From Tetramitus jugosus (taxonomy: Eukaryota; Protista; Heterolobosea), in the NCBI GenBank assembly GCA_937625935.1, contig OW569383.1:248001-312000 (forward strand): a stretch of 64,000 nucleotides of DNA, read 5' to 3'. The notes beneath the pieces are model-generated. The model did no database searches and was not told the origin of the DNA. It saw nothing but the letters and a program-made list of their open reading frames with translations. Below, one piece after another: positions 19,966 to 33,354 of the stretch. Both the position numbers and the translations under genes were made by a program. Numbering within the stretch: the stretch's first letter is position 1; the number at the start of each line of letters is the position of its first letter.

Positions 19966-22900
19966 TTACAACACATAATTTTCCTTCAGGGAAACCAATG
20001 TTGACTCCAAGTGATTTAAATCCTCTAACCAAAGCATTTCAGCGGTCTTCGCAGCGAGTTCGTCGTAACGCTCTTGTTTCTCTGCAACTTGCTTTTGCAA
20101 TTTTTCTACATTCTCGATTGTTAAATTCCATACAGGTAGGTTGAGAACATATTGGAAGGAGTCATTGATTGGTGCTAATCCCAATTCATCTTTCAGATAA
20201 GCAATAATATCTTCACGCTTCTTGCTGGCAAATGTACTCAATGGGTTGTTCTTACCTCCACTATTTGTTGATGTGAAGTGCTTCAAGAATGTGAGCTTGT
20301 TGTTGAAGAGCTTTAGCTCTGATTGATACTGATCTAACATAAACTGTCTCCGCTTCTCATAATACTTGAGTCTTGTTGGATAAAATTGTTTCATGATATC
20401 CGTTACAGATGAGTACTGAGCAATGTGGCCCTCCTCGTCAAAAAGTGTCATATTATTCAATGAAACATGACTCTCTAGCTTTAGGAGTTTGTGCAGCAAT
20501 TTTTGGTTGATGCTATCAATAATTTCTTCAGATCCATTCGGAAAATGCTCTGCCTTTAGAACGATATCAAATCGAACGTTGACATCAGTGTGATGCTCTG
20601 AGAACTTCTTAATCATACTGTCATCACCAGAAGCTTGATTGACCAAGTAACTTTTGTAATCTTCTGTCCATTTGCCAAGGGGTAATTCCGTGATTGATAT
20701 TGTGTAGTCCTTATCATTCTTTTTCATGGGTAATAGATGAATAGTTCCAAAGGAACTGTATCGTTTCTTTTCATCATCATATTGAAGCTCGCCCGTGAAG
20801 TTTCTTGTCCAAATCTTAAGATCCTTGCAGCGCTTCTTATTGATCATATTTTTGAGATTTTGGACAATCTCTAGAGGATGGAATGTGGGAACACTCGTGC
20901 TCCAACCAGTACCCACTCCTTCTGAACCATTGACCAGAATCATAGGAATTATGGGAACAAAGAACTTTGGCTCAATTTGCATACCATCCTCTTCGTTGTA
21001 TTCGAGAATTGGATCGTCAGCCTCTGGGAAAATTTGACGTGTGATTGAGTTCAAACGAGTAAATATGTAACGAGAGCTGGCAGCATCCTTTCCTCCCTGA
21101 AGTCTCGTTCCGAACTGACCCGAAGGAAATAGTAGTGGAATGTTATTGCCACTTCCAACAAAATCCTGAGCCATGTTAACAATTGTAGAGTTGAGTGATG
21201 CTTCACCGTGATGATAAGCTGTCTTCTCGCCTACAAAGCCTGCTAACTGAGCTACTTTTATCTCACTATTCGAATTACTCTTTCTTTTGTTCATGATGGC
21301 GAACAGAACCTTGCGCTGACTAGGTTTCAATCCATCGACCAATGAGGGGATACTTCTTACATTGTCGTATTGAGAGAAGTGAACAAATTCTTTGTTGAAG
21401 AAGTGTGTCAGTGAAACCCGACCTTTGGAATGATCCACAAATTGATCACCTTCATTCTCTGACAGTAAGCGATAATTTGAGAGCCATTCTTTTCGTTTTT
21501 GGGCGTTGCTCCTGTGAAAGATCATCTCGATTAGATTATCGTCAGTAGCTTTCTTCTCATCAAAATCAAATATAATTCTGTGCTTTTCGTTGAGTTTGGA
21601 AAAGTATTCTTTCGCTTCGCTACCGGTACTGGTACCCAGACCCTTGTAGTATTTAATACTCCATTTGTTTGCTTCGTCAGTACCACTTTCCTCAATCAAC
21701 TTTGATCTCCACTGTTCATACTCAGCAATAGAAAAAAATGACAGAGTATTCTTTTGTTTGCTTGCTTTGATAAGTGGAGTGATAAACTCCTCAACAAATC
21801 CAGATCGCAATAAATTAGGATAAAAGTAATGCAAGAAATTGATAAATAATCCCTTAATGTGCGAACCATCATGATCTTGATCACACATGAGCATGACACG
21901 ACCATAACGAAGACCTTTCCTAACATCTCCATTCACATTGTCGCTATCTATATAATTTTCCAATCCCAGAATTTTCTTCAGATTTGCAATTTCGGCATTA
22001 TTCGATATTTGATCGATGGAAGCATCTCGCACGTTCAACAACTTTCCCTTCAATGGGAAAACACCAAATGTATCTCTTCCAATTACACTCAAGCCAGCAA
22101 CCGCCAGAGCCTTAGCAGAGTCACCCTCCGTTAAAATCAGTGTACACTTGTGAGAGTGAGGTCCGCCAGCCAAATTGGCGTCATCCAATTTCGGAATCAT
22201 CAGTCGTGTAGCAGTTTGGCTAGATGTCCTCGTTTTGCTTCTCATTTTTCTCTGTTGTCTAAACAGAGCGGTTGAGAGAATATCTTCGAGGATATCCGTT
22301 TTTTGAACAAATTGCTTGACAAGATCATCAATCTTTTTCTCGTTTTCAGCTCCACTGTGCACCATAAAGTGTTTGTTCATGAACTGGAAGCTCTTCGTTG
22401 TTAGTGTTTCTTTGGTTTGTGAGTCGAAAGATGGATTCTCGATCAAACAATTAGCAAATAATGATATCTGAGAGAGAATAAGCCTGAAGAATTGCGCTTC
22501 GTTGTTCGCTGAGTTTGTAGAATTCATCTCATGCTCTTTGAACAAGGCATGCTTCTTCACATGCTCCCAAACCTTTCTTGCAATAACAGATGATAAATGG
22601 GAAATGTGTGTTCCTCCATTGGATGTTGCGATACTGTTCACAAATGAAAAATGAACAAATTCATTCATTTCATGAGAATGACCCTTCATGGGCGAAGAGG
22701 AATGGAGTCCAACTGATGGACCCAATGCCAACTCTAAATTATGATTGATCTTCTTATAGGCAAACACTGTATCACTTGTCGCATCAACTTGCTCACTCTC
22801 ACGATAAAATAACTTGATGTAATCTTGGAAATTGGATACGGGAACGAGCTCATCATTTAAAAACACTTTCAATTTTGGATTACAGGCAGCCAAGTCATAC

Positions 22901-24042
22901 ACTCTTCTACGTAACAAGGCTAAAAAGTCCTCAATTTGCTCTTGATTCTCAAAACGAGCAAATTTGCTCAAATCTGGTTGAATCGATATCTCAATCGATC
23001 CATTACTATTGCTGTTGCTTTGGCCCTTGGTCTTACTTGAAACTAAAGGAGTGACCAGAGCCTCTGAACACTGACTCATATTATCGGACCATACTTGCTT
23101 ATAGTGCTTGTGATGCAACGGATCAACAATCTCAACAATAAACTGACAACTAAATATGTTGGCCAATTTGGCACCATAACCGTTTCGACCACCAGTGAAC
23201 TTGACCTCTGAATCATCAAAGTTTGAACCAGTCAACAAATGACCAAACACCAACTCTGGTACATAAATTTTCTCCGTTTTATGGATTTGAACCGGAATGG
23301 ATTTTCCATTGTTCCAAACATGAATCCAAAAATTGTGATTGTTATCCGTGTTTGACATTTCAAAACGCACTCGCAGTTCATTGGTGCCCGTTCCTGATCG
23401 ATTATGATTGTCCACTGCATTCACCAACAGTTCATCAATAATCTTGTACAGAGCAGGTGCATAGGATATGCTCTTGTTAATAATCGATTGTTGTGCAGAG
23501 GCAGTAGCAGTAGCAGTACTGGCAGTTGTAGTTGATTTTGTTCTTGTTGGTTTCGATAAGGACAATGAGGATAAAATAAAGGCATTGCGAGTGAAACGAT
23601 CCACAGATCCAACATAGGTATCCGGTCGATCCAACACATGTTGAATGGGTGATTTTTTTTGATAAATGTCTTCAATTGATTTTTGAGCACTATTATTATT
23701 ATTTGCAATGATAGTAGTAGGAGCACTCATGTGTTGTTCATCATCATCATTATCGGCAACAACAACCGCAGTTGCTGCCCTTTTCGTGCTTTTGACTACT
23801 ACATCAGTGTTTGATGTAGTTGTTGTTGATTTTTTGACTGCTCTTGTGGTTTTGGGTTTATTGGTGGTCGGTGATGCACGCAATGGATTGGTTGATTGTC
23901 GCAGTGAAAAATGAGTCATGTTATGAAATGATAAAGAAGAAGATGGTTGGTGTTGTAGTGATTGAGTGGTGTGGAGTCTGATGCGATGGAGAAGTGTCGC
24001 ACTGCTTCCATGACTACTCTTTGATTGCAACAATCGTTTCAT
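19966..24042 (-). CDS. TOP2: DNA topoisomerase II (type IIA), probably the mitochondrial paralog
   Basis: RPDTYVGS, DELLVNAVDN, GGRNGYGAKLANIFS, LTEGDSA, PLKGKLLNVR, DQDHDGSHIKG, catalytic SRY. ATG at 24042; basic/Ser-rich presequence; no long C-terminal domain. Confidence 0.95.
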   Translation of the reverse strand: MKRLLQSKSSHGSSATLLHRIRLHTTQSLQHQPSSSLSFHNMTHFSLRQSTNPLRASPTTNKPKTTRAVKKSTTTTSNTDVVVKSTKRAATAVVVADNDDDEQHMSAPTTIIANNNNSAQKSIEDIYQKKSPIQHVLDRPDTYVGSVDRFTRNAFILSSLSLSKPTRTKSTTTASTATATASAQQSIINKSISYAPALYKIIDELLVNAVDNHNRSGTGTNELRVRFEMSNTDNNHNFWIHVWNNGKSIPVQIHKTEKIYVPELVFGHLLTGSNFDDSEVKFTGGRNGYGAKLANIFSCQFIVEIVDPLHHKHYKQVWSDNMSQCSEALVTPLVSSKTKGQSNSNSNGSIEISIQPDLSKFARFENQEQIEDFLALLRRRVYDLAACNPKLKVFLNDELVPVSNFQDYIKLFYRESEQVDATSDTVFAYKKINHNLELALGPSVGLHSSSPMKGHSHEMNEFVHFSFVNSIATSNGGTHISHLSSVIARKVWEHVKKHALFKEHEMNSTNSANNEAQFFRLILSQISLFANCLIENPSFDSQTKETLTTKSFQFMNKHFMVHSGAENEKKIDDLVKQFVQKTDILEDILSTALFRQQRKMRSKTRTSSQTATRLMIPKLDDANLAGGPHSHKCTLILTEGDSAKALAVAGLSVIGRDTFGVFPLKGKLLNVRDASIDQISNNAEIANLKKILGLENYIDSDNVNGDVRKGLRYGRVMLMCDQDHDGSHIKGLFINFLHYFYPNLLRSGFVEEFITPLIKASKQKNTLSFFSIAEYEQWRSKLIEESGTDEANKWSIKYYKGLGTSTGSEAKEYFSKLNEKHRIIFDFDEKKATDDNLIEMIFHRSNAQKRKEWLSNYRLLSENEGDQFVDHSKGRVSLTHFFNKEFVHFSQYDNVRSIPSLVDGLKPSQRKVLFAIMNKRKSNSNSEIKVAQLAGFVGEKTAYHHGEASLNSTIVNMAQDFVGSGNNIPLLFPSGQFGTRLQGGKDAASSRYIFTRLNSITRQIFPEADDPILEYNEEDGMQIEPKFFVPIIPMILVNGSEGVGTGWSTSVPTFHPLEIVQNLKNMINKKRCKDLKIWTRNFTGELQYDDEKKRYSSFGTIHLLPMKKNDKDYTISITELPLGKWTEDYKSYLVNQASGDDSMIKKFSEHHTDVNVRFDIVLKAEHFPNGSEEIIDSINQKLLHKLLKLESHVSLNNMTLFDEEGHIAQYSSVTDIMKQFYPTRLKYYEKRRQFMLDQYQSELKLFNNKLTFLKHFTSTNSGGKNNPLSTFASKKREDIIAYLKDELGLAPINDSFQYVLNLPVWNLTIENVEKLQKQVAEKQERYDELAAKTAEMLWLEDLNHLESTLVSLKENYVL

Positions 24043-24186
24043 GTTGTTTTTTTTGATGGTGTTGATTCTTTTTCTTTGATGGTGTGGAAAGTCGTGCAAA
24101 AAATTGAACTGTCCTCACAGAGCGAAATGCTTTTCGAATCCACGATGGATTGAGAACCTGAGTCGAGCGAAACTCTAGGCAATAGT

Positions 24187-25469: not shown

Positions 25470-26868
25470 ATGACAGAACAATCACAAACAGTAACAGCAC
25501 CTGCCGTTCTTCGAGTCTTTATCGAAAAGGCTTACAACTTGTCCAAATCTTCAGATTGCTTTTGCAAGGTGCGCTTGCTTCAATCTGAACCAACAGCAAC
25601 AGGCGATCAACCGTCGATCGTCATTGGCGAAAAGCAAAAAACAAAGACTGTGAAAAAATCAGGCGACCCTGTTTGGGATGAAGAGCTACAACTGATTGTG
25701 CCTTCATCGACTGTGCTTTCTTCACTTCGTTTAGAGATACGACTGTTTGAGGAGAGAGTATTGAGAAGGAGTGCTCTGATTGACACTGTGAGCTTCTCTC
25801 TCGATCGTCTTTACTATGGTGACAGCGTTAAAAGTAAGTGACGAGCAAGCTCGAGTTTAGAGTTTTGCCTATTTGTCATCATAGGATCACTGTTGGTACT
25901 TACACATGTATTTTTTAATTCATTGTGCAGAGGTGTTTTCAATTGAAGGTCAAAAAAATTTAGTAGGTCAACTGTATGTGAAATTCACAGCAGAAAACTT
26001 TGGGAGACCATTGCCCAGTGTACAGGAGCGAGCACAAACCACAACCAAGAGAATTCATTTGACAAAAGCATGTGAGTTGTTCAAGGTTCCACTCACGGGC
26101 AATCTAGTGAAAGATTACAAGGAGTTGCGCGCTAGGATTCACCAGTGGCGACTCACACAGGTCACCATGGAGAATGTTGCTTCATTGACGTTTCATTATT
26201 ATGACAGCGGAGCTAAGGGCCATTTGTTGGTTAGTGATTTAACACGGATGGCACAACACATCTTGTCCTTCTTGACCAGTAATTCATCTGGTAACTTGTT
26301 GAGCAGCAATACGAAGCGATTGATGCAGAAATGGGAGAAGCACAAGGAGGATCATTTGATCGAGTATTATAACAAGCAAGAGTTTATTGGCATTGCCAGT
26401 GATATACTGAAGCAAGAACATTTTTTGAACAAGGCACCCATCACGAAAATCGTAGATCGAAGCGAGAGCCAAAAGTTTAATGAGATGGCACTCACTGTGC
26501 TCGGTGTCTTGGGATTTGAGAAATCGAGTACATCGATTGACATGTACAATGAATCGATGATTGATTCACAGACTGGCGTAAAACCATTCCACATTGCAGC
26601 CTATCTCTGTCCTCAGGAGCGGCCACTGTTCCAATCCAATCTGGCTCAACTGTTTTTTGATTTTTATCATCTGAGTCGAGTGGACGATGATGGAACAGAT
26701 ATCGATAATCCAAGCCATTGGAGAATGACACCACACGATTTTCAAACTTTCCTTGGACATACGGACAACAAGATGAAGAATATTCTTGTGAAGAGTGTTT
26801 GGGAAAGCTATGCTCTGGGTGATTTTAGAACGGAGTTTGTGAAGCTTGAGGAGTTAAATTTTGGATGA
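25470..26868 (+). CDS. C2 domain plus EF-hand-like protein; two exons (25470-25833, 25931-26868); 3' end possibly disrupted
   Basis: C2 motifs LRVFIEKAYNL and KTKTVKKSGDPVWDEEL. GTAAGT...TGCAG intron 25834-25930 joins in frame (DSVKKVFSIEG). EF-like FHYYDSGAKGHLLVSDL. Confidence 0.75.
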
Positions 26869-27238
26869 TGAACTCAGAGTGCTAACGTGCCAATATGGCA
26901 ATAAAGAAGGCTCGATAGAGCGCAACGGCCATACCAATCACATCGTGCTCGACAATGCTCAAAAGTATTGCGTTTAGTTGTATTTAAAGTTTTTGCAACA
27001 AAGAGATGAAGGCAAAACGACATCTTTGAGATTGTTGCTTGTCGGATTGTCTCCAAAATGTAGGAGGATAGAGGATATACAATTACCACAAAAACCATTC
27101 AACAATTATGAAAGTTTACAATTCTGTGAAGGAGTTGTACTAGAGATTTTTTTTCTCTAAAAAAAAAAATAAAAAAAAAAAGATAGAAACTGTAAAACAA
27201 TTAACGCTTTATTTGGCGGCTAAATAAACCTCGGTGGT

Positions 27239-27922
27239 CTACCTCAACATCATGGAGTTAAGGAAGTCAACTACCTGAGCCCTCGTTTTATTAATGACCC
27301 AACCATTTAATGTTGTAGCTTTGAGATCCTCCTTCACTGATTCTACTGTTGTATCCTTCAACAGAAGACCCACATTGTATGCGTCGAGTATACAATGAGT
27401 GTGAAGACTGCTGGCGAGGAACTCTTCGAACCATGATCGCGGAGACTCAGTAAAGTACAACAACACTCTCTCAAGACCAGGAACCGAGACAACCATAAGA
27501 TGAGGATGTTGTGGCAATGAGACCTGTGGCACTTGATTCACAAAAATGGAGAAGTACCTCGATCGAACAGGTACCAAAGCATTGCTATCCAATTGCATTC
27601 CAAAGCAATGTTTCAAGCACCAGATTGCCTCCTCTATATTGGTGTCAAACACTTCCCCAGCAATTAGCCTGTTACGCAACCAACTGTGAATGAAACGTTC
27701 CCAAGCAACACAATTATTTACAACAAACACATCCAAGACCACATCCAAGACCAGCACCTTGGTCAACAACTTCCTCAGCCTATTGTACATATCTGTACTT
27801 TGACCTATTTTAGCACCACGAACCTCGCGGGATGACAACACATAGATACACTGTCCAATCTCACGAAGATCATTTTTAGAGATTTGATTCTCTCCATTGA
27901 TTGTAATAGCACAACTAATCAT
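27239..27922 (-). CDS. T5orf172/MUG113-type GIY-YIG superfamily nuclease
   Basis: CIYVL...AKIGQSTDMYNRLRKL...WERFIHSWLRNRLIAGEVFD. Confidence 0.8.
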   Translation of the reverse strand: MISCAITINGENQISKNDLREIGQCIYVLSSREVRGAKIGQSTDMYNRLRKLLTKVLVLDVVLDVFVVNNCVAWERFIHSWLRNRLIAGEVFDTNIEEAIWCLKHCFGMQLDSNALVPVRSRYFSIFVNQVPQVSLPQHPHLMVVSVPGLERVLLYFTESPRSWFEEFLASSLHTHCILDAYNVGLLLKDTTVESVKEDLKATTLNGWVINKTRAQVVDFLNSMMLR

Positions 27923-28020
27923 AAAACGAAAAACAACAAAGAAAGAAGTGGTTAAGTTTGAGTGCTTGCAATTGCATGAGATTTTTTTTTTGTGTGTCTA
28001 TTTATTGTTTGTATGATGGC

Positions 28021-28093
28021 TGTTGATGGATTGTAATAGTTTGTAATAGATTGTAATAAGGTTGATGGGTGTTAGATGGGTTAATAAGGTGGA
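28021..28093 (+). repeat. Irregular 10-bp-period, cytosine-free G/T-rich tandem repeat between the nuclease and RT genes
   Basis: tgttgatgga/ttgtaatagt/ttgtaataga/ttgtaataag/gttgatgggt/gttagatggg/ttaataaggt. Confidence 0.75.
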
Positions 28094-28150
28094 CTTTTTG
28101 GACTAGAATAACAGGATCTCAAAAAGCAATCACAAAGTATACTACACTAG

Positions 28151-29383
28151 ATGAATGACCAATGGAAAGAGGCGGCCATGCATTTAATGAAGGCATTACA
28201 AGCGGTTTTACAAACCCAACAATTTTTAACAGTGAACAATGGAGAGCCGTCGGTAGTGGGGGAAAGCGTACTCACCAATTATGAGCCTCCAAAGCGCTTC
28301 AAGTTAACTACTGGTCCTGTGCCAACTAGTATGGACAATGAAAAGAACAACAAAGTTTCTGCGAAGGCACAGAAACTGAGTCGACCATATTGGCAAACAC
28401 CACAAGAAATCTTGCAGGAAGGAATGACGATTCGATTTTACAAGCCAGAAGCCATTGTTCGCAGCAAGCTTCGTCAACCAATGATCCTTAATAGGGTTAA
28501 AGGCTCAAATATTCAGTTGATTGATACTCGAGTTGAAGAATACGTGAAGGAAGGTATTCTAGTTGAAATTCCAAGAGACAAGGCATTGTTCATTGAATCC
28601 ATTGCTGTAGTTCCACGAGCATCAGATCCAAGCCGTCCAAGAGAGGTTCTTGACTTTACTGAACTGAACCAATTCATCCTTGATTCAGACTGTAAGTTGC
28701 CAACCCGAAAGAATCTCGTCGGACTCACTGACCAATATTCCTATGCAGCCTCAATTGATGTCAAATCCTGTTACACAAACATCAAGTTAAATGAATCATT
28801 TCAAGCCTATTGCTGTGTCGGATGGAAAGGAAAGGTATACAAATTTACTCGCGTGCCATTTGGTATCAAATGTGCCCCTGCATGTTGTCAAGTGGTCACG
28901 TCCCATCTCGCACATAAGACTACTCTGGTGTATCTGGATGACTTCTTGCTATTGGGTGAGTCAGAGGAGCGTGTCCTAGCCCTTGTAGAGGAACAAAAGG
29001 TTGCTCTCGAAAAGAATGGCTTCCCCATCAGTCTCACAAAGTCTATGTTGAAGCCGCGACAAGAAATTGAGTTCTGTGGTTACAGAATATGTTTTGGTTC
29101 AGAGCAAAGAGGTGTGTATACTACTGACAAGCATCTGATGGATTTGTCATTGCTCATAAGACTCTGTCAAACGAGCGAGCACATTGATCTCAAGACCTGG
29201 CAACGATTTCTTGGTAAGTACAATTGGTGTAGAGCCAAGAAGGAGGACGAAGCTGTCCACGACAAGCTAGTGGCCCTCATGAATGAACGCGACAGTGAGA
29301 CCAATCACATCATGCTTGACCACGTCGCTCGAGCAATGCTCAGCAATATGGTAGCAAGATGTTCTCTTTCTTTTGATTTTTGA
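28151..29383 (+). CDS. Stand-alone reverse transcriptase of DIRS/LTR type (no RNase H, protease, integrase or recombinase)
   Basis: [59 protein letters not shown], thumb [10 protein letters not shown]; stop about 50 aa later. Confidence 0.9.
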
Positions 29384-29476
29384 TTGTATTTTATGGTGTG
29401 TGTATTGTAAATACATTGTAAAACTCGTTGTAAATAAAAAGTCCGTCAAAAAGCTCAGACGGAGACAAAAGGACAT

Positions 29477-29549
29477 CGCCCACCGAGGGGCTCGAACCCT
29501 CGACCACAAGGTTAAGAGCCTTGCGCTCTACCGACTGAGCTAGACGGGC
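29477..29549 (-). tRNA. tRNA-Lys (CTT)
   Basis: GCCCGTCTAGCTCAGTCGGTAGAGCGCAAGGCTCTTAACCTTGTGGTCGAGGGTTCGAGCCCCTCGGTGGGCG; cloverleaf; T-run downstream. Confidence 0.97.
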
Positions 29550-31090: not shown

Positions 31091-32389
31091 TCATGTTTGT
31101 TCGTGGTTGTTACAGCTTACAACAACATCGCACAAGAGCTGCTTCAGACGCAACGAATTGATGTTGAGCATAAGTCGCGAGCGTTTTCCAACTGCTAGAT
31201 GTATTATTGTTGTGAAGTATGAGCCTGTCATTTTCACAACCGTCTTGTCATCTCTATCTACTTCAGTGCCAAACTCCAATAGTTCTGGTGCAGTAGTATC
31301 CATACAACTTTCTGAAACCTTGTACAATTGCTTCTTAGAACGAGCGTACATGGTGATACTACCGGAACCAATTTGATTCACCAGACCCAAGGAATGCAAA
31401 GTAATAACCTTCTCTGGTTGTTTTGGGCCACCCATATGAGCATATCCACTAGCATCCAGAGCAATAAATTGATCGTAGGAACAACAAACATCAACTATAT
31501 GAGTATTCTGACGATGGAAGTATTCATGACGTACAAAATCCTCCTTCTTGGTAGCAACAAACAATTTGCCTTGATGATCCAAAAGAACTGAAAACTCTGC
31601 TCCAGCATCAATTTTCTTGCATTGGAAATTGATGGGTCTACTCTCCAGTGAATCAGGATGAACGTAGTGCATGAGTGAGGGATATAGATTCAAGGTGTCA
31701 TTTGGACTAAAAATACCTAACAAGAACACATTCAATGTGTACAGGTCTTGCATGAGCAAAAATCGACGGCCACGGCCGATTTTGCAGATTCGAAAAGTGT
31801 TGCTCGCATCAATGGGAACTCGCTTTGGTATATATCCCGTTGTTTGTACGTTGGAAGAATTGATTTGAAGCGCGACACTTGGCACCTGTGTTTCATCCCA
31901 AAACCAACGGCGAACATTACCACAGGTGAACGCCTGACCCGATGCACTCAAGAAGGCAGAGAACCATCCACCAACCTCCACACTCTCAATGTGCTCCTTC
32001 TCTATATCACCACGTATCAACGTTGGGTACTCTACCTTGCTACAATGACCCAATCCCAACTGCCCATCACGATTATCACCAAGTGCCCAACATCTCCCAC
32101 CGAAATCCAACAAAATGACATGCAACGCTCCACAGGCAACTTGTTTAATTTGTCTTTGACCTCTCATGGTCAACCACTGCTCGGCCTTGTGCTTCACAGA
32201 GTAACCATCTGTTTGAAAGTCCAAATCCGAAGGAGACACATCAGTGAACTCTCGTCCAAGGGGCTCCACTTTGCTCAGTTCTCCACTTGTCCAGAGTTCA
32301 CCATGAGACCCGTTACCACGGCCGAGAAGAACAGTCGTTCCAGGAATGATGTGTTGGGTCAATGTTTCTTGATCTATCAAGGTGTGCAT
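31091..32389 (-). CDS. RCC1/BLIP-II repeat protein
   Basis: IKQVACGALHVILL, GDNRDGQLGLG, IDAGAEFSVLL. Confidence 0.85.
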   Translation of the reverse strand: MHTLIDQETLTQHIIPGTTVLLGRGNGSHGELWTSGELSKVEPLGREFTDVSPSDLDFQTDGYSVKHKAEQWLTMRGQRQIKQVACGALHVILLDFGGRCWALGDNRDGQLGLGHCSKVEYPTLIRGDIEKEHIESVEVGGWFSAFLSASGQAFTCGNVRRWFWDETQVPSVALQINSSNVQTTGYIPKRVPIDASNTFRICKIGRGRRFLLMQDLYTLNVFLLGIFSPNDTLNLYPSLMHYVHPDSLESRPINFQCKKIDAGAEFSVLLDHQGKLFVATKKEDFVRHEYFHRQNTHIVDVCCSYDQFIALDASGYAHMGGPKQPEKVITLHSLGLVNQIGSGSITMYARSKKQLYKVSESCMDTTAPELLEFGTEVDRDDKTVVKMTGSYFTTIIHLAVGKRSRLMLNINSLRLKQLLCDVVVSCNNHEQT

Positions 32390-32446: not shown

Positions 32447-32518
32447 GGGGACAACGGAGAATCGAACTCCGGGCCTCTCGCACCCAAAGCGAGAATCATA
32501 CCACTAGACCATTGTCCC
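32447..32518 (-). tRNA. tRNA-Pro (TGG)
   Basis: GGGACAATGGTCTAGTGGTATGATTCTCGCTTTGGGTGCGAGAGGCCCGGAGTTCGATTCTCCGTTGTCCCC. Confidence 0.97.
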
Positions 32519-32560
32519 TTCATATCGAATAAAAATTCTAAATAGTTGCAAAAAAAGAAA

Positions 32561-33354
32561 CAAAAAAAACAAAAAAAAAAAATACCTCAAGAGCAGAAAA
32601 GAATTGATTAAAGAAAACGAGAAGTGGTGGTTGGAAGCAGTATTGATGGACTGGGATGAATGGAACATGTTCCTCAAGTGCCCGTTTGGATTGGATAGAA
32701 GAGAACTCTGGTTTTATCACCAGGTTAGGAGTGGTACATTGCACACGCTATCGGTAATGCGTGGACTTTATGGCAGTGTGGAAGATGCGAGATGCCCAAT
32801 CTGTAAGAAAGAAGATGACACTATAGTTCATCTGTTAGTTGAGTGTCCGCCCGCACAGGAGGCTAGGCGTAGAATTAGAGAGGTTTTTGCCTTACAGCTG
32901 AACAAATTGAACATACCTAAGGATATAAGAGTGGTATTGTGGTTCGACAGCTACCTATTTTGTAATGGAAATATAACGAAAAGAGCGGTAGATATGACGT
33001 CGAGTGATATTCTCGCAGGTATGATGGGGAAGGAAGGAGACACGAGGGAGGATATCACCACGGCACTACAAAAGTCGGGATGCAAGCAAAAAGAAGCTGT
33101 AAAGAGGGTAGCGAGTGTGATCAATAGTACTAAAAGAATATGCATCAAAGCACTCCACACGCTGTTCACCGCCTCAAAGGAACAGTGGAGAGAAACTATG
33201 CTCAGCACTACAAATGTTAGTCCGCACGGACTTGATGACGATAGGAAGTGATACAATACTCTGCACCGTACCGGTGCAGAGTTGAATCGCTTCTAAACTT
33301 GTTGTACAGAATAAAGTGGCAACACCAGGTTGTATGGAAAAAAAAAAAAAAAAA
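32561..33354 (+). mobile_element. 5'-truncated LINE (ORF2 C-terminus with CCHC zf-RVT) upstream of tRNA-Pro
   Basis: ORF 32604-33251 has CPICKKEDDTIVHLLVEC; 11-bp hairpin 33258-33282; AATAAAGT; A17 tail 33338-33354; near-perfect TSD GCAAAAAA(A)GAAA at 32548-32560 and 33355-33366. Confidence 0.9.

Follow-up and report, generated by a model that had tools for sequence, protein, structure and literature searches.

A tRNA-associated retroelement family in Tetramitus jugosus that pairs a small reverse transcriptase with a separate GIY-YIG nuclease

Within a 64,000-nucleotide stretch of the genome of the heterolobosean Tetramitus jugosus (assembly GCA_937625935.1, contig OW569383.1, positions 248,001 to 312,000; G000:C40:248001-312000 in our numbering, and 'the window' from here on), two divergent genes, encoding a reverse transcriptase (RT) and a GIY-YIG-type nuclease, end close to a tRNA-Lys gene. 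Does this pair constitute a mobile element and, if so, how does it reach its position beside the tRNA? Comparison of the window with the 26.35-Mb, 56-contig assembly and with sequence databases leads us to believe that the cassette is probably one copy, with both open reading frames (ORFs) intact, of an autonomous site-specific retrotransposon family, in which the nuclease would cut the tRNA gene and cDNA synthesis would be primed at the target. An earlier note on this DNA had proposed a new two-gene, nuclease-primed, tRNA-targeted retroelement; copies at multiple loci establish the tRNA-linked two-gene family, whereas the priming step is one that we infer.

At the window locus, the nuclease gene (227 amino acids; Pfam T5orf172) occupies positions 27239-27922 on the minus strand and the RT gene (410 amino acids; Pfam RVT_1) positions 28151-29383 on the plus strand, separated by a 228-bp divergent intergenic region (27923-28150) that is a putative bidirectional promoter. 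As the note had described, the two ORFs are intact and each is followed by AATAAA, at 29433 (plus strand) after the RT and, read as TTTATT, at 27208, 31 nt beyond the stop codon of the minus-strand nuclease gene. They are the only two ORFs of at least 60 amino acids with a domain in the unit, Pfam reporting RVT_1 and T5orf172 (the nuclease also matches MUG113). The ORF list, Pfam and blastn between copies revealed no gag, protease, integrase, recombinase (including the tyrosine recombinase considered earlier) or long terminal repeat (LTR) within it. The extent of the cassette, previously given as 27239-29460, had to be amended: when the window element was compared by blastn with all related loci, the true unit proved to be about 2.46 kb long, from 27028 to 29488.

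On the RT side, the element 3' region (29384-29476, plus strand) contains TTGTAAA repeats and the AATAAA at 29433, and homology with a copy on contig C30 continues at 98% identity up to 29488. Its last part, 29461-29476, is an element-borne trailer that provides the T4 RNA polymerase III (Pol III) terminator for the adjoining target, an intact tRNA-Lys(CTT) gene (29477-29549, minus strand; ARAGORN, and 66.7 bits with the Rfam tRNA model) whose 3' end lies 93 bp from the RT stop codon. The last 12 nt of this tRNA gene (29477-29488), hereafter the 12-mer, form the right limit of homology between copies, and canonical copies have them a second time at the opposite end. On the nuclease side, nine plus-strand nucleotides of the tRNA-Lys 3' end, part of the 12-mer, abut the nuclease stop codon (27229-27237) and are bounded by segment X (27028-27228), a non-coding terminal segment of about 200-210 bp with two short hairpin palindromes that was recognized by blastn against other copies. 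Immediately outside it, at 27011-27024, lies a remnant of the original tRNA-Lys trailer, of the AAAACGACAT type, with a T4 Pol III terminator on the tRNA-sense (minus) strand. Trailers of this type also stand behind four other tRNA-Lys(CTT) genes and are unlike the AAAAGGACAT trailer that the element itself carries on the right.

When the whole genome was searched in six frames, 37 matches to the RT and 27 to the nuclease emerged. The divergent pair recurs at C30 (twice), C15, C23, C16 (twice), C14, C35 and C28, in addition to solitary fragments, giving at least 10 loci with the window (C40) included, so that the RT-nuclease linkage holds beyond one locus, as it does in two other sources described below. 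Loci were assembled from 3-4-kb pieces before tRNA genes were called with ARAGORN. A tRNA-Lys(CTT) gene lies tail to tail with the RT, about 93-98 bp from its stop codon, at C40, C30, C15 and C23, and likewise at C35, where the RT end is decayed; tRNA-Lys(TTT) takes the equivalent position at C18 and C7. Homology between copies starts at 27028 and stops either at 29488 or at the far end of the tRNA, since the tRNA genes are identical. The canonical Lys unit thus begins with the native trailer and a 12-mer, followed by X (210 bp), a 22-bp spacer, the nuclease gene (minus strand), the 228-bp intergenic region, the RT gene (plus strand) and a 3' region of about 93 bp with the element-borne T4-terminator trailer, and closes with a second 12-mer that continues into an intact tRNA body. 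Copy number, termini and tRNA linkage, which the earlier note had recommended examining, are those of a multicopy family of constant layout and constant target.

The 12-mer is present 33 times in the genome, in 26 tRNA-Lys(CTT) genes and at seven element left junctions before X, and nowhere else; the reversed pattern, used as a control, occurs once. Remains of the family were found within 2 kb of nine of the 26 genes. The proposal that the element inserts downstream of a tRNA was correct in so far as the tRNA link is real, but the element overlaps the tRNA by its last 12 nt, and a 12-mer stands at each end of a canonical copy. The Lys-CTT and Lys-TTT genes differ inside these 12 nt, and therefore the 12-mer alone cannot be the recognition signal. 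We also observed that about 19 of the 26 tRNA-Lys(CTT) genes, many of them element-free nearby, have trailers of the form AAAA-[G/C/T][G/T/C]AC[A/G]T, like the last 10-20 nt of the element. The flanks of dispersed tRNA paralogues are normally not alike, and the shared trailers may have been left by past insertions or by co-conversion.

Between the full copies at C30 and C15, identity over 2.7 kb reaches 98.5% and the flanks are unrelated; the RT ORFs have a dS of 0.004 and the nuclease ORFs a dS of 0. Because such similar copies stand in differing flanks, the family has moved recently. In the arrays at these two loci, the intact unit adjoins the tRNA and older, internally deleted units lie on the far side. 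At C8, a unit of about 600 bp, also internally deleted, has perfect 12-mers at both ends, and gene-less units that keep both termini look like non-autonomous derivatives. Both genes are under purifying selection, with pN far below pS in every pair and dN/dS, where dS is unsaturated, of 0.065-0.27 for the RT and 0.07-0.29 for the nuclease.

Intact ORFs under purifying selection would also be expected of a domesticated host pair, a retron-like RT with a nuclease effector used, for example, in defence and placed by chance beside a tRNA gene. The earlier note had considered this explanation, and RT-plus-effector pairs are a known bacterial defence layout. We judge it highly improbable, and indeed essentially excluded, because the copy population has the structure of a transposon's and not of a host gene's: instead of a single-copy locus there are at least 10, mostly decayed, tandem, internally deleted or inverted, always at one kind of target, a repeat of which flanks them, and near-identical, recently duplicated copies occur in unrelated flanks. 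Furthermore, a scan against Rfam found the tRNA as the sole structured RNA.

We then considered what kind of RT the element encodes. The ORF matches RVT_1 at 1.5e-18 (67.7 bits, cutoff 29.6), and its translation contains the conserved RT motifs reported earlier, including KS.L.P.QEIEF. A low-complexity N-terminus is followed by fingers, palm and thumb, with no RNase H, and the catalytic residues D203, D263 and D264 are invariant in the alignment; the AF2 model (pLDDT 55) was too poor for a fold search. By sequence, the closest solved structures in the PDB are the RTs of foamy virus, cauliflower mosaic virus (CaMV), Ty3 and Moloney murine leukaemia virus (MMLV), and telomerase is absent among these PDB matches. 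A profile search of 1.84 billion representative proteins recovered about a dozen family members, after which scores fall from 165 to 140 bits and general LTR/DIRS-class RTs begin. Among the next-best matches of middle size (n = 47), eight contain a Dam-like methyltransferase and 12 an RNase H, the layout of DIRS pol; the very long ones are Ty3-type proteins with integrase. In a tree of 130 RT cores, which holds no named reference sequences, the family is a clade (SH-aLRT 99) that has uncharacterised short RTs as its sisters (97). Together they fall outside a 93-row clade that takes in every methyltransferase-bearing protein, on the side of the Ty3-type RTs, although support for this split is only 86. 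From these comparisons, 'DIRS/LTR-class' is a fair label for an RT of the retrovirus/Ty3/DIRS class, as the note had called it, but 'DIRS' proper is not shown and 'DIRS-type' is only approximate, given the position outside the methyltransferase-bearing clade.

An RT of LTR/DIRS-like class that ends where this one does might be a truncated piece of an ordinary DIRS, Ngaro or Ty3 element beside an unrelated nuclease gene. We find this scarcely credible, and the observations essentially exclude it. The RT C-terminus, ..CSL(S/P)F(D/N)(F/Y), is identical in position in all lineages, full copies of three lineages being ORFs of 398-428 amino acids, and no longer version was found in the genome or among the 5.8 billion and 1.84 billion database proteins searched. 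Because all full-length members share one C-terminal end, the absence of RNase H characterizes the family and does not reflect truncation. Nor is the nuclease unlinked elsewhere, the other circumstance that the note had thought damaging to its proposal: it accompanies the RT at every well-preserved locus.

The nuclease matches PF10544 (T5orf172) over residues 25-104 with an E-value of 2.8e-5 and 25.0 bits against a cutoff of 20. It has two domains, an N-terminal GIY-YIG/T5orf172 domain (approximately residues 21-114) and a C-terminal domain (approximately 121-227), and its AF2 model has a pLDDT of 78.6. Foldseek gave no match of this model to the PDB at E ≤ 0.001. With an exhaustive structural aligner, residues 21-114 were closest to HIGLE (Z 6.2), Slx1 (5.2), UvrC (4.8) and I-TevI (4.7), with T4 EndoII also among the matches, over a range of 6.2-4.4. 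These Z-scores are modest and agree with the Pfam match and the motif in predicting a GIY-YIG fold. Residues Y27, K38, G40, R48 and E90 are invariant in seven sequences, down to 40% identity, and their presumed catalytic roles are assigned from the known motif. The C-terminal domain had no usable Atlas match, only similarities of Z about 3-4 to unrelated folds; our guess is that this half of the protein reads the target.

T5orf172/GIY-YIG proteins are typical phage homing endonucleases (10.1101/2023.03.23.533998), and the family could accordingly spread as DNA, with the enzyme cutting empty tRNA-Lys genes and the cassette being copied in by double-strand-break repair, for which the tRNA body and trailer would provide the homology, and the RT being a passenger or having another role. 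Co-conversion during homing would give the trailer similarity seen at most of the 26 tRNA-Lys(CTT) genes, and an RNA hallmark is absent. However, purifying selection is of similar strength on the RT and the nuclease, the RT has invariant catalytic aspartates, and it travels with the nuclease in three lineages and at several tRNA targets. In addition, one side of the insertion offers only 12 nt and a short trailer as homology, and subfamilies in Lys-CTT, Lys-TTT, Asn and Trp tRNAs, each with matching repeats, require de novo insertion and not only homing. We therefore consider homing quite improbable as the explanation of the family.

Relatives outside this genome are few: among 5.8 billion database proteins, five resemble the RT and three the nuclease. 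A species known from soil metagenomes, represented by contigs of four different samples, also has this divergent pair, its RT being 51% identical. Here an intact tRNA-Asn(GTT) gene lies about 65 bp past the nuclease stop codon, and the opposite (RT) end of the element bears a repeat of 24 nt from the 3' end of that tRNA. The pair is also present in an AT-rich contig from an unrelated assembly, with the 5' half of a tRNA about 260 bp after the RT. Judged from these sequences, the pairing of the genes, their link to a tRNA and the tRNA-derived repeat at the flanks are conserved across sources; the tRNA species, the tRNA end and the orientation vary by subfamily. Soil libraries labelled metatranscriptomic contain 151-nt pieces identical or near-identical to both genes of the window element, one of which spans the canonical, non-inverted X junction. 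They show that the organism or a near relative lives in soil, and would be evidence of expression only if the libraries are truly RNA.

RTs of the sister clade provide two further observations. In one case (P0012; metagenome contig L062:1257-4027, also L063 and L064), an ORF 41 bp upstream of the RT is perhaps part of the same gene, separated by a short intron, and the RT is followed on the same strand by a 240-amino-acid ORF matching phage endonuclease VII/HNH (PHROG 5.8e-9, 2.8e-7). A related small RT with a different stand-alone nuclease suggests that nuclease modules have been swapped. In the other case (P0029; L065:3776-6945), the RT stands beside a divergent 367-amino-acid ORF whose 3' end abuts a tRNA-Ala(AGC) gene; comparing profiles of this ORF and the nuclease family gave no significant match (probability 0.06), and a GIY..YVG-like motif is seen by eye only.

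How, then, would the element insert? We suggest that the nuclease cuts the two strands at the 3' end of the tRNA gene with a stagger of 12 bp, and that the freed 3'-OH of the tRNA-sense strand primes reverse transcription of the RT-sense element RNA from the RNA's 3' end. In the Lys subfamily the terminal 12 nt of the tRNA flank the insert; the repeat beside the tRNA body preserves a complete gene, for which the element supplies a fresh trailer with a Pol III terminator. Because reverse transcription would be target-primed, neither RNase H nor an integrase would be needed, and we favour target priming because no RNase H, integrase or recombinase is encoded. The solitary RT fragments are mostly C-terminal and tRNA-proximal (C37, C18, C7, C8), which fits 5' truncation of an RT-sense template. 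The features that bear on target-primed reverse transcription are the 12-nt (Lys) and 24-nt (Asn) repeats, C-terminal RT fragments, which however have no repeat at the truncated side, and one clear inversion. As for a tRNA primer-binding site like that of LTR elements, the RT-sense strand ends in 12 nt complementary to the tRNA-Lys 3' end, without the complement of CCA; these 12 nt are also explained as the target repeat. Pol III read-through from the tRNA was considered as a source of template and was ruled out by A5 runs on the plus strand, T5 terminators in that direction, less than 50 nt from the tRNA end.

The inversion is that of segment X in the window copy, which is 89-96% identical to X at C30, C15, C23, C35 and C8 and, alone among the copies, lies in the opposite orientation relative to the nuclease. 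The inverted block consists of X and 9 nt of the 12-mer, the 22-bp spacer that other copies have between X and the nuclease stop codon is gone, and the left flank keeps the native-type trailer (AAAACGACAT) but just the first base of the 12-mer. As a result of the inversion, the outer end of X meets the nuclease stop codon and its inner end meets the flank. In the twin priming of L1 elements, the second target strand primes internally and copies the RNA to its 5' end, which produces an inverted 5' segment with a small junction deletion. By analogy, the topology at the window hints at target-primed reverse transcription, with the inverted far terminus arising from a second, internal priming event. 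If this is true, the template would be an RT-sense RNA with its 3' end on the tRNA side, and its 5' end would extend into the tRNA-derived repeat by 9 nt or more.

The window copy is also a mosaic. X and the 3' 580 bp of the nuclease gene are 96% identical to the copies at C30, C15 and C23, but from 27817 onward the element cannot be aligned with them, and its RT protein is only 61-67% identical to theirs. This RT type is shared only with the decayed copy at C35 (92% DNA identity), and the pattern points to exchange between subfamilies. A separate rearrangement was seen at C14:166176-167270, where a frame of 343-370 amino acids joins nuclease residues ~72-203 to RT residues ~177-410 on one strand. 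Such a same-strand fusion needs an inversion between the normally divergent genes and may be a second inversion case; the C14 locus overall is a head-to-head jumble of copies.

Several points weigh against target priming. A search for sequencing runs of the organism listed none recorded as RNA, the soil 'metatranscriptomic' 151-nt pieces may be DNA, and neither junction has poly(A) or another RNA hallmark. Truncated copies such as C37 have no 12-mer on the truncated side, and our search found no very short truncated insertions, consisting of the 12-mer, 5-35 nt, and the 12-mer with the tRNA. A full-length RNA template would have to span two divergent genes. The flanking 12-mer would fit recombination or homing too, and the twin-priming view relies on one clear case and needs an 11-nt deletion of the target, for which a DNA-level rearrangement is a possible alternative.

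The same family might instead integrate by another route. A complete, perhaps circular, DIRS-like cDNA with one 12-mer might be made off the chromosome and enter the tRNA gene at the nuclease cut, the shared 12 nt serving for annealing or recombination. Consistent with this, the nearest characterised relatives of the RT include DIRS-like RT-RNaseH-methyltransferase proteins, the right end of the element has its own trailer and 12-mer, the head-to-tail tandem arrays join as 'UTR-12mer-X' (UTR, untranslated region) just as a circle junction would, and the junctions are without RNA-specific marks; prokaryotic integrative elements with a tRNA 3' end in their attachment site offer a likeness. However, no RNase H, normally required for double-stranded cDNA, is encoded, nor is a recombinase or an integrase, and copy-to-copy blastn revealed neither terminal nor internal complementary repeats such as DIRS elements have. 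The tRNA-proximal RT-end fragments and the inverted copies also fit target priming better. We regard this route as unlikely, and retain target-primed insertion as the probable one.

How does the element compare with known retroelements? DIRS1-like elements are defined by a tyrosine recombinase, an RT-RNase H-methyltransferase pol and inverted terminal and internal complementary repeats (PMC3266345). They share with the family the broad RT class (with YLDD) and the absence of LTRs and of a DDE integrase, and many of the next-best database matches of the RT are RT-RNaseH-methyltransferase proteins of DIRS type. The family differs in its lack of a tyrosine recombinase, an RNase H, a methyltransferase and a gag, and in its GIY-YIG nuclease, target repeat and tRNA-gene specificity, with an RT outside the methyltransferase clade (split support 86). 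In self- and copy-to-copy blastn, the only repeat is the 12-nt target-derived direct repeat, with no inverted terminal repeat, internal complementary region or split direct repeats. Compared with Ty3-like LTR elements, it is without LTRs, gag, protease and DDE integrase.

Penelope-like elements also combine an RT with an endonuclease of the GIY-YIG superfamily, have no RNase H and are thought to use target-primed reverse transcription. In the published description (PMC8557442), a single ORF fuses their nuclease and RT, and this RT is telomerase-related. The layout here differs from that description, as the note had maintained: the nuclease is of T5orf172 type and is a separate ORF at all loci, on the opposite strand and 228 bp away at the window, and the relatives of the RT are retroviral, Ty3 and caulimoviral, with DIRS and Ty3 types as best database kin and no telomerase match in the PDB.

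R2 inserts in 28S rDNA, and TRE5 and TRE3 insert near tRNA genes of Dictyostelium; R2, TRE and L1 elements are target-primed, with 5'-truncated and inverted copies. Like R2 and the TRE elements, the family is aimed at a multicopy host RNA gene, has 5'-truncated and inverted copies and is proposed to insert by target priming at a nuclease nick. In contrast to them, its RT is not LINE-like, its nuclease is a separate gene, and it inserts within the last 12 nt of the tRNA and rebuilds the gene exactly, neither 50-100 bp away nor disruptively. Prokaryotic elements that integrate at tRNA 3' ends likewise carry a tRNA 3' segment, leave the gene intact and are flanked by direct repeats, but those are DNA elements of bacteria and archaea with tyrosine or serine integrases, whereas the family is eukaryotic and encodes an RT and a GIY-YIG nuclease, with no integrase. 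In function the element is closest to site-specific target-primed elements, and in its effect on the target to the prokaryotic tRNA-integrating ones.

Some remaining features of the window can be mentioned. The intergenic region has three TTGTAAT repeats with 10-bp spacing at 28031-28062; TTGTAA(T/A) or TTGTATA motifs, all in RT sense, occur there, at 29405-29434 and in the 22-bp spacer after the nuclease stop codon of canonical copies. Read as RNA, UGUAAAUA resembles a site for a PUF protein. The region 26850-27185 had been taken for the decayed coding tail of an upstream gene, a candidate that was rejected, as from 27028 on it is segment X. Self-comparison of the 64-kb window revealed no further copies of either gene, and the truncated and frameshifted retroelement copies in it that the earlier note had mentioned belong to other element types, the truncated copies of the family being on other contigs. 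One ORF, at 32447-33251, has a weak match to zf-RVT (8.8e-5, below cutoff) and lies about 85 bp past the 5' end of a tRNA-Pro(TGG) gene; the ORF may be a piece of another retroelement, of non-LTR type and likewise tRNA-associated. The neighbouring host genes, both on the minus strand, are a 1377-amino-acid intronless ORF at 19966-24099, a putative DNA topoisomerase II by its motifs, and a gene for an RCC1-repeat protein at 31091-32389 (Pfam RCC1, 3.1e-13).

No description of such a layout was found in the literature searched, a search outside which Repbase and most subscription journals lay, and the family is apparently an undescribed small mobile element with only an RT and a separate GIY-YIG nuclease. 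Retrotransposon orders are sorted by RT class and integration enzyme. We are evenly divided as to whether the family, together with the sister clade with an HNH/endonuclease VII-type nuclease, forms a new order-level group of eukaryotic retrotransposons, in which an LTR/DIRS-class RT that has shed its RNase H would be combined with a modular, stand-alone homing-type nuclease, and insertion inside tRNA genes would proceed by target-primed reverse transcription that rebuilds them. The pairing of an LTR/DIRS-class RT with a stand-alone homing-type GIY-YIG nuclease in any case breaks the usual combination, and suggests that integration modules are swappable. Two small proteins acting on a short, defined target would make the family a compact system for the biochemistry of site-specific, RT-mediated DNA insertion, and the way in which subfamilies read tRNA-Lys, -Asn or -Trp is directly testable. 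Insertion inside a multicopy tRNA gene that is restored in the process is a 'safe harbour' solution otherwise found mainly in prokaryotic integrative elements.

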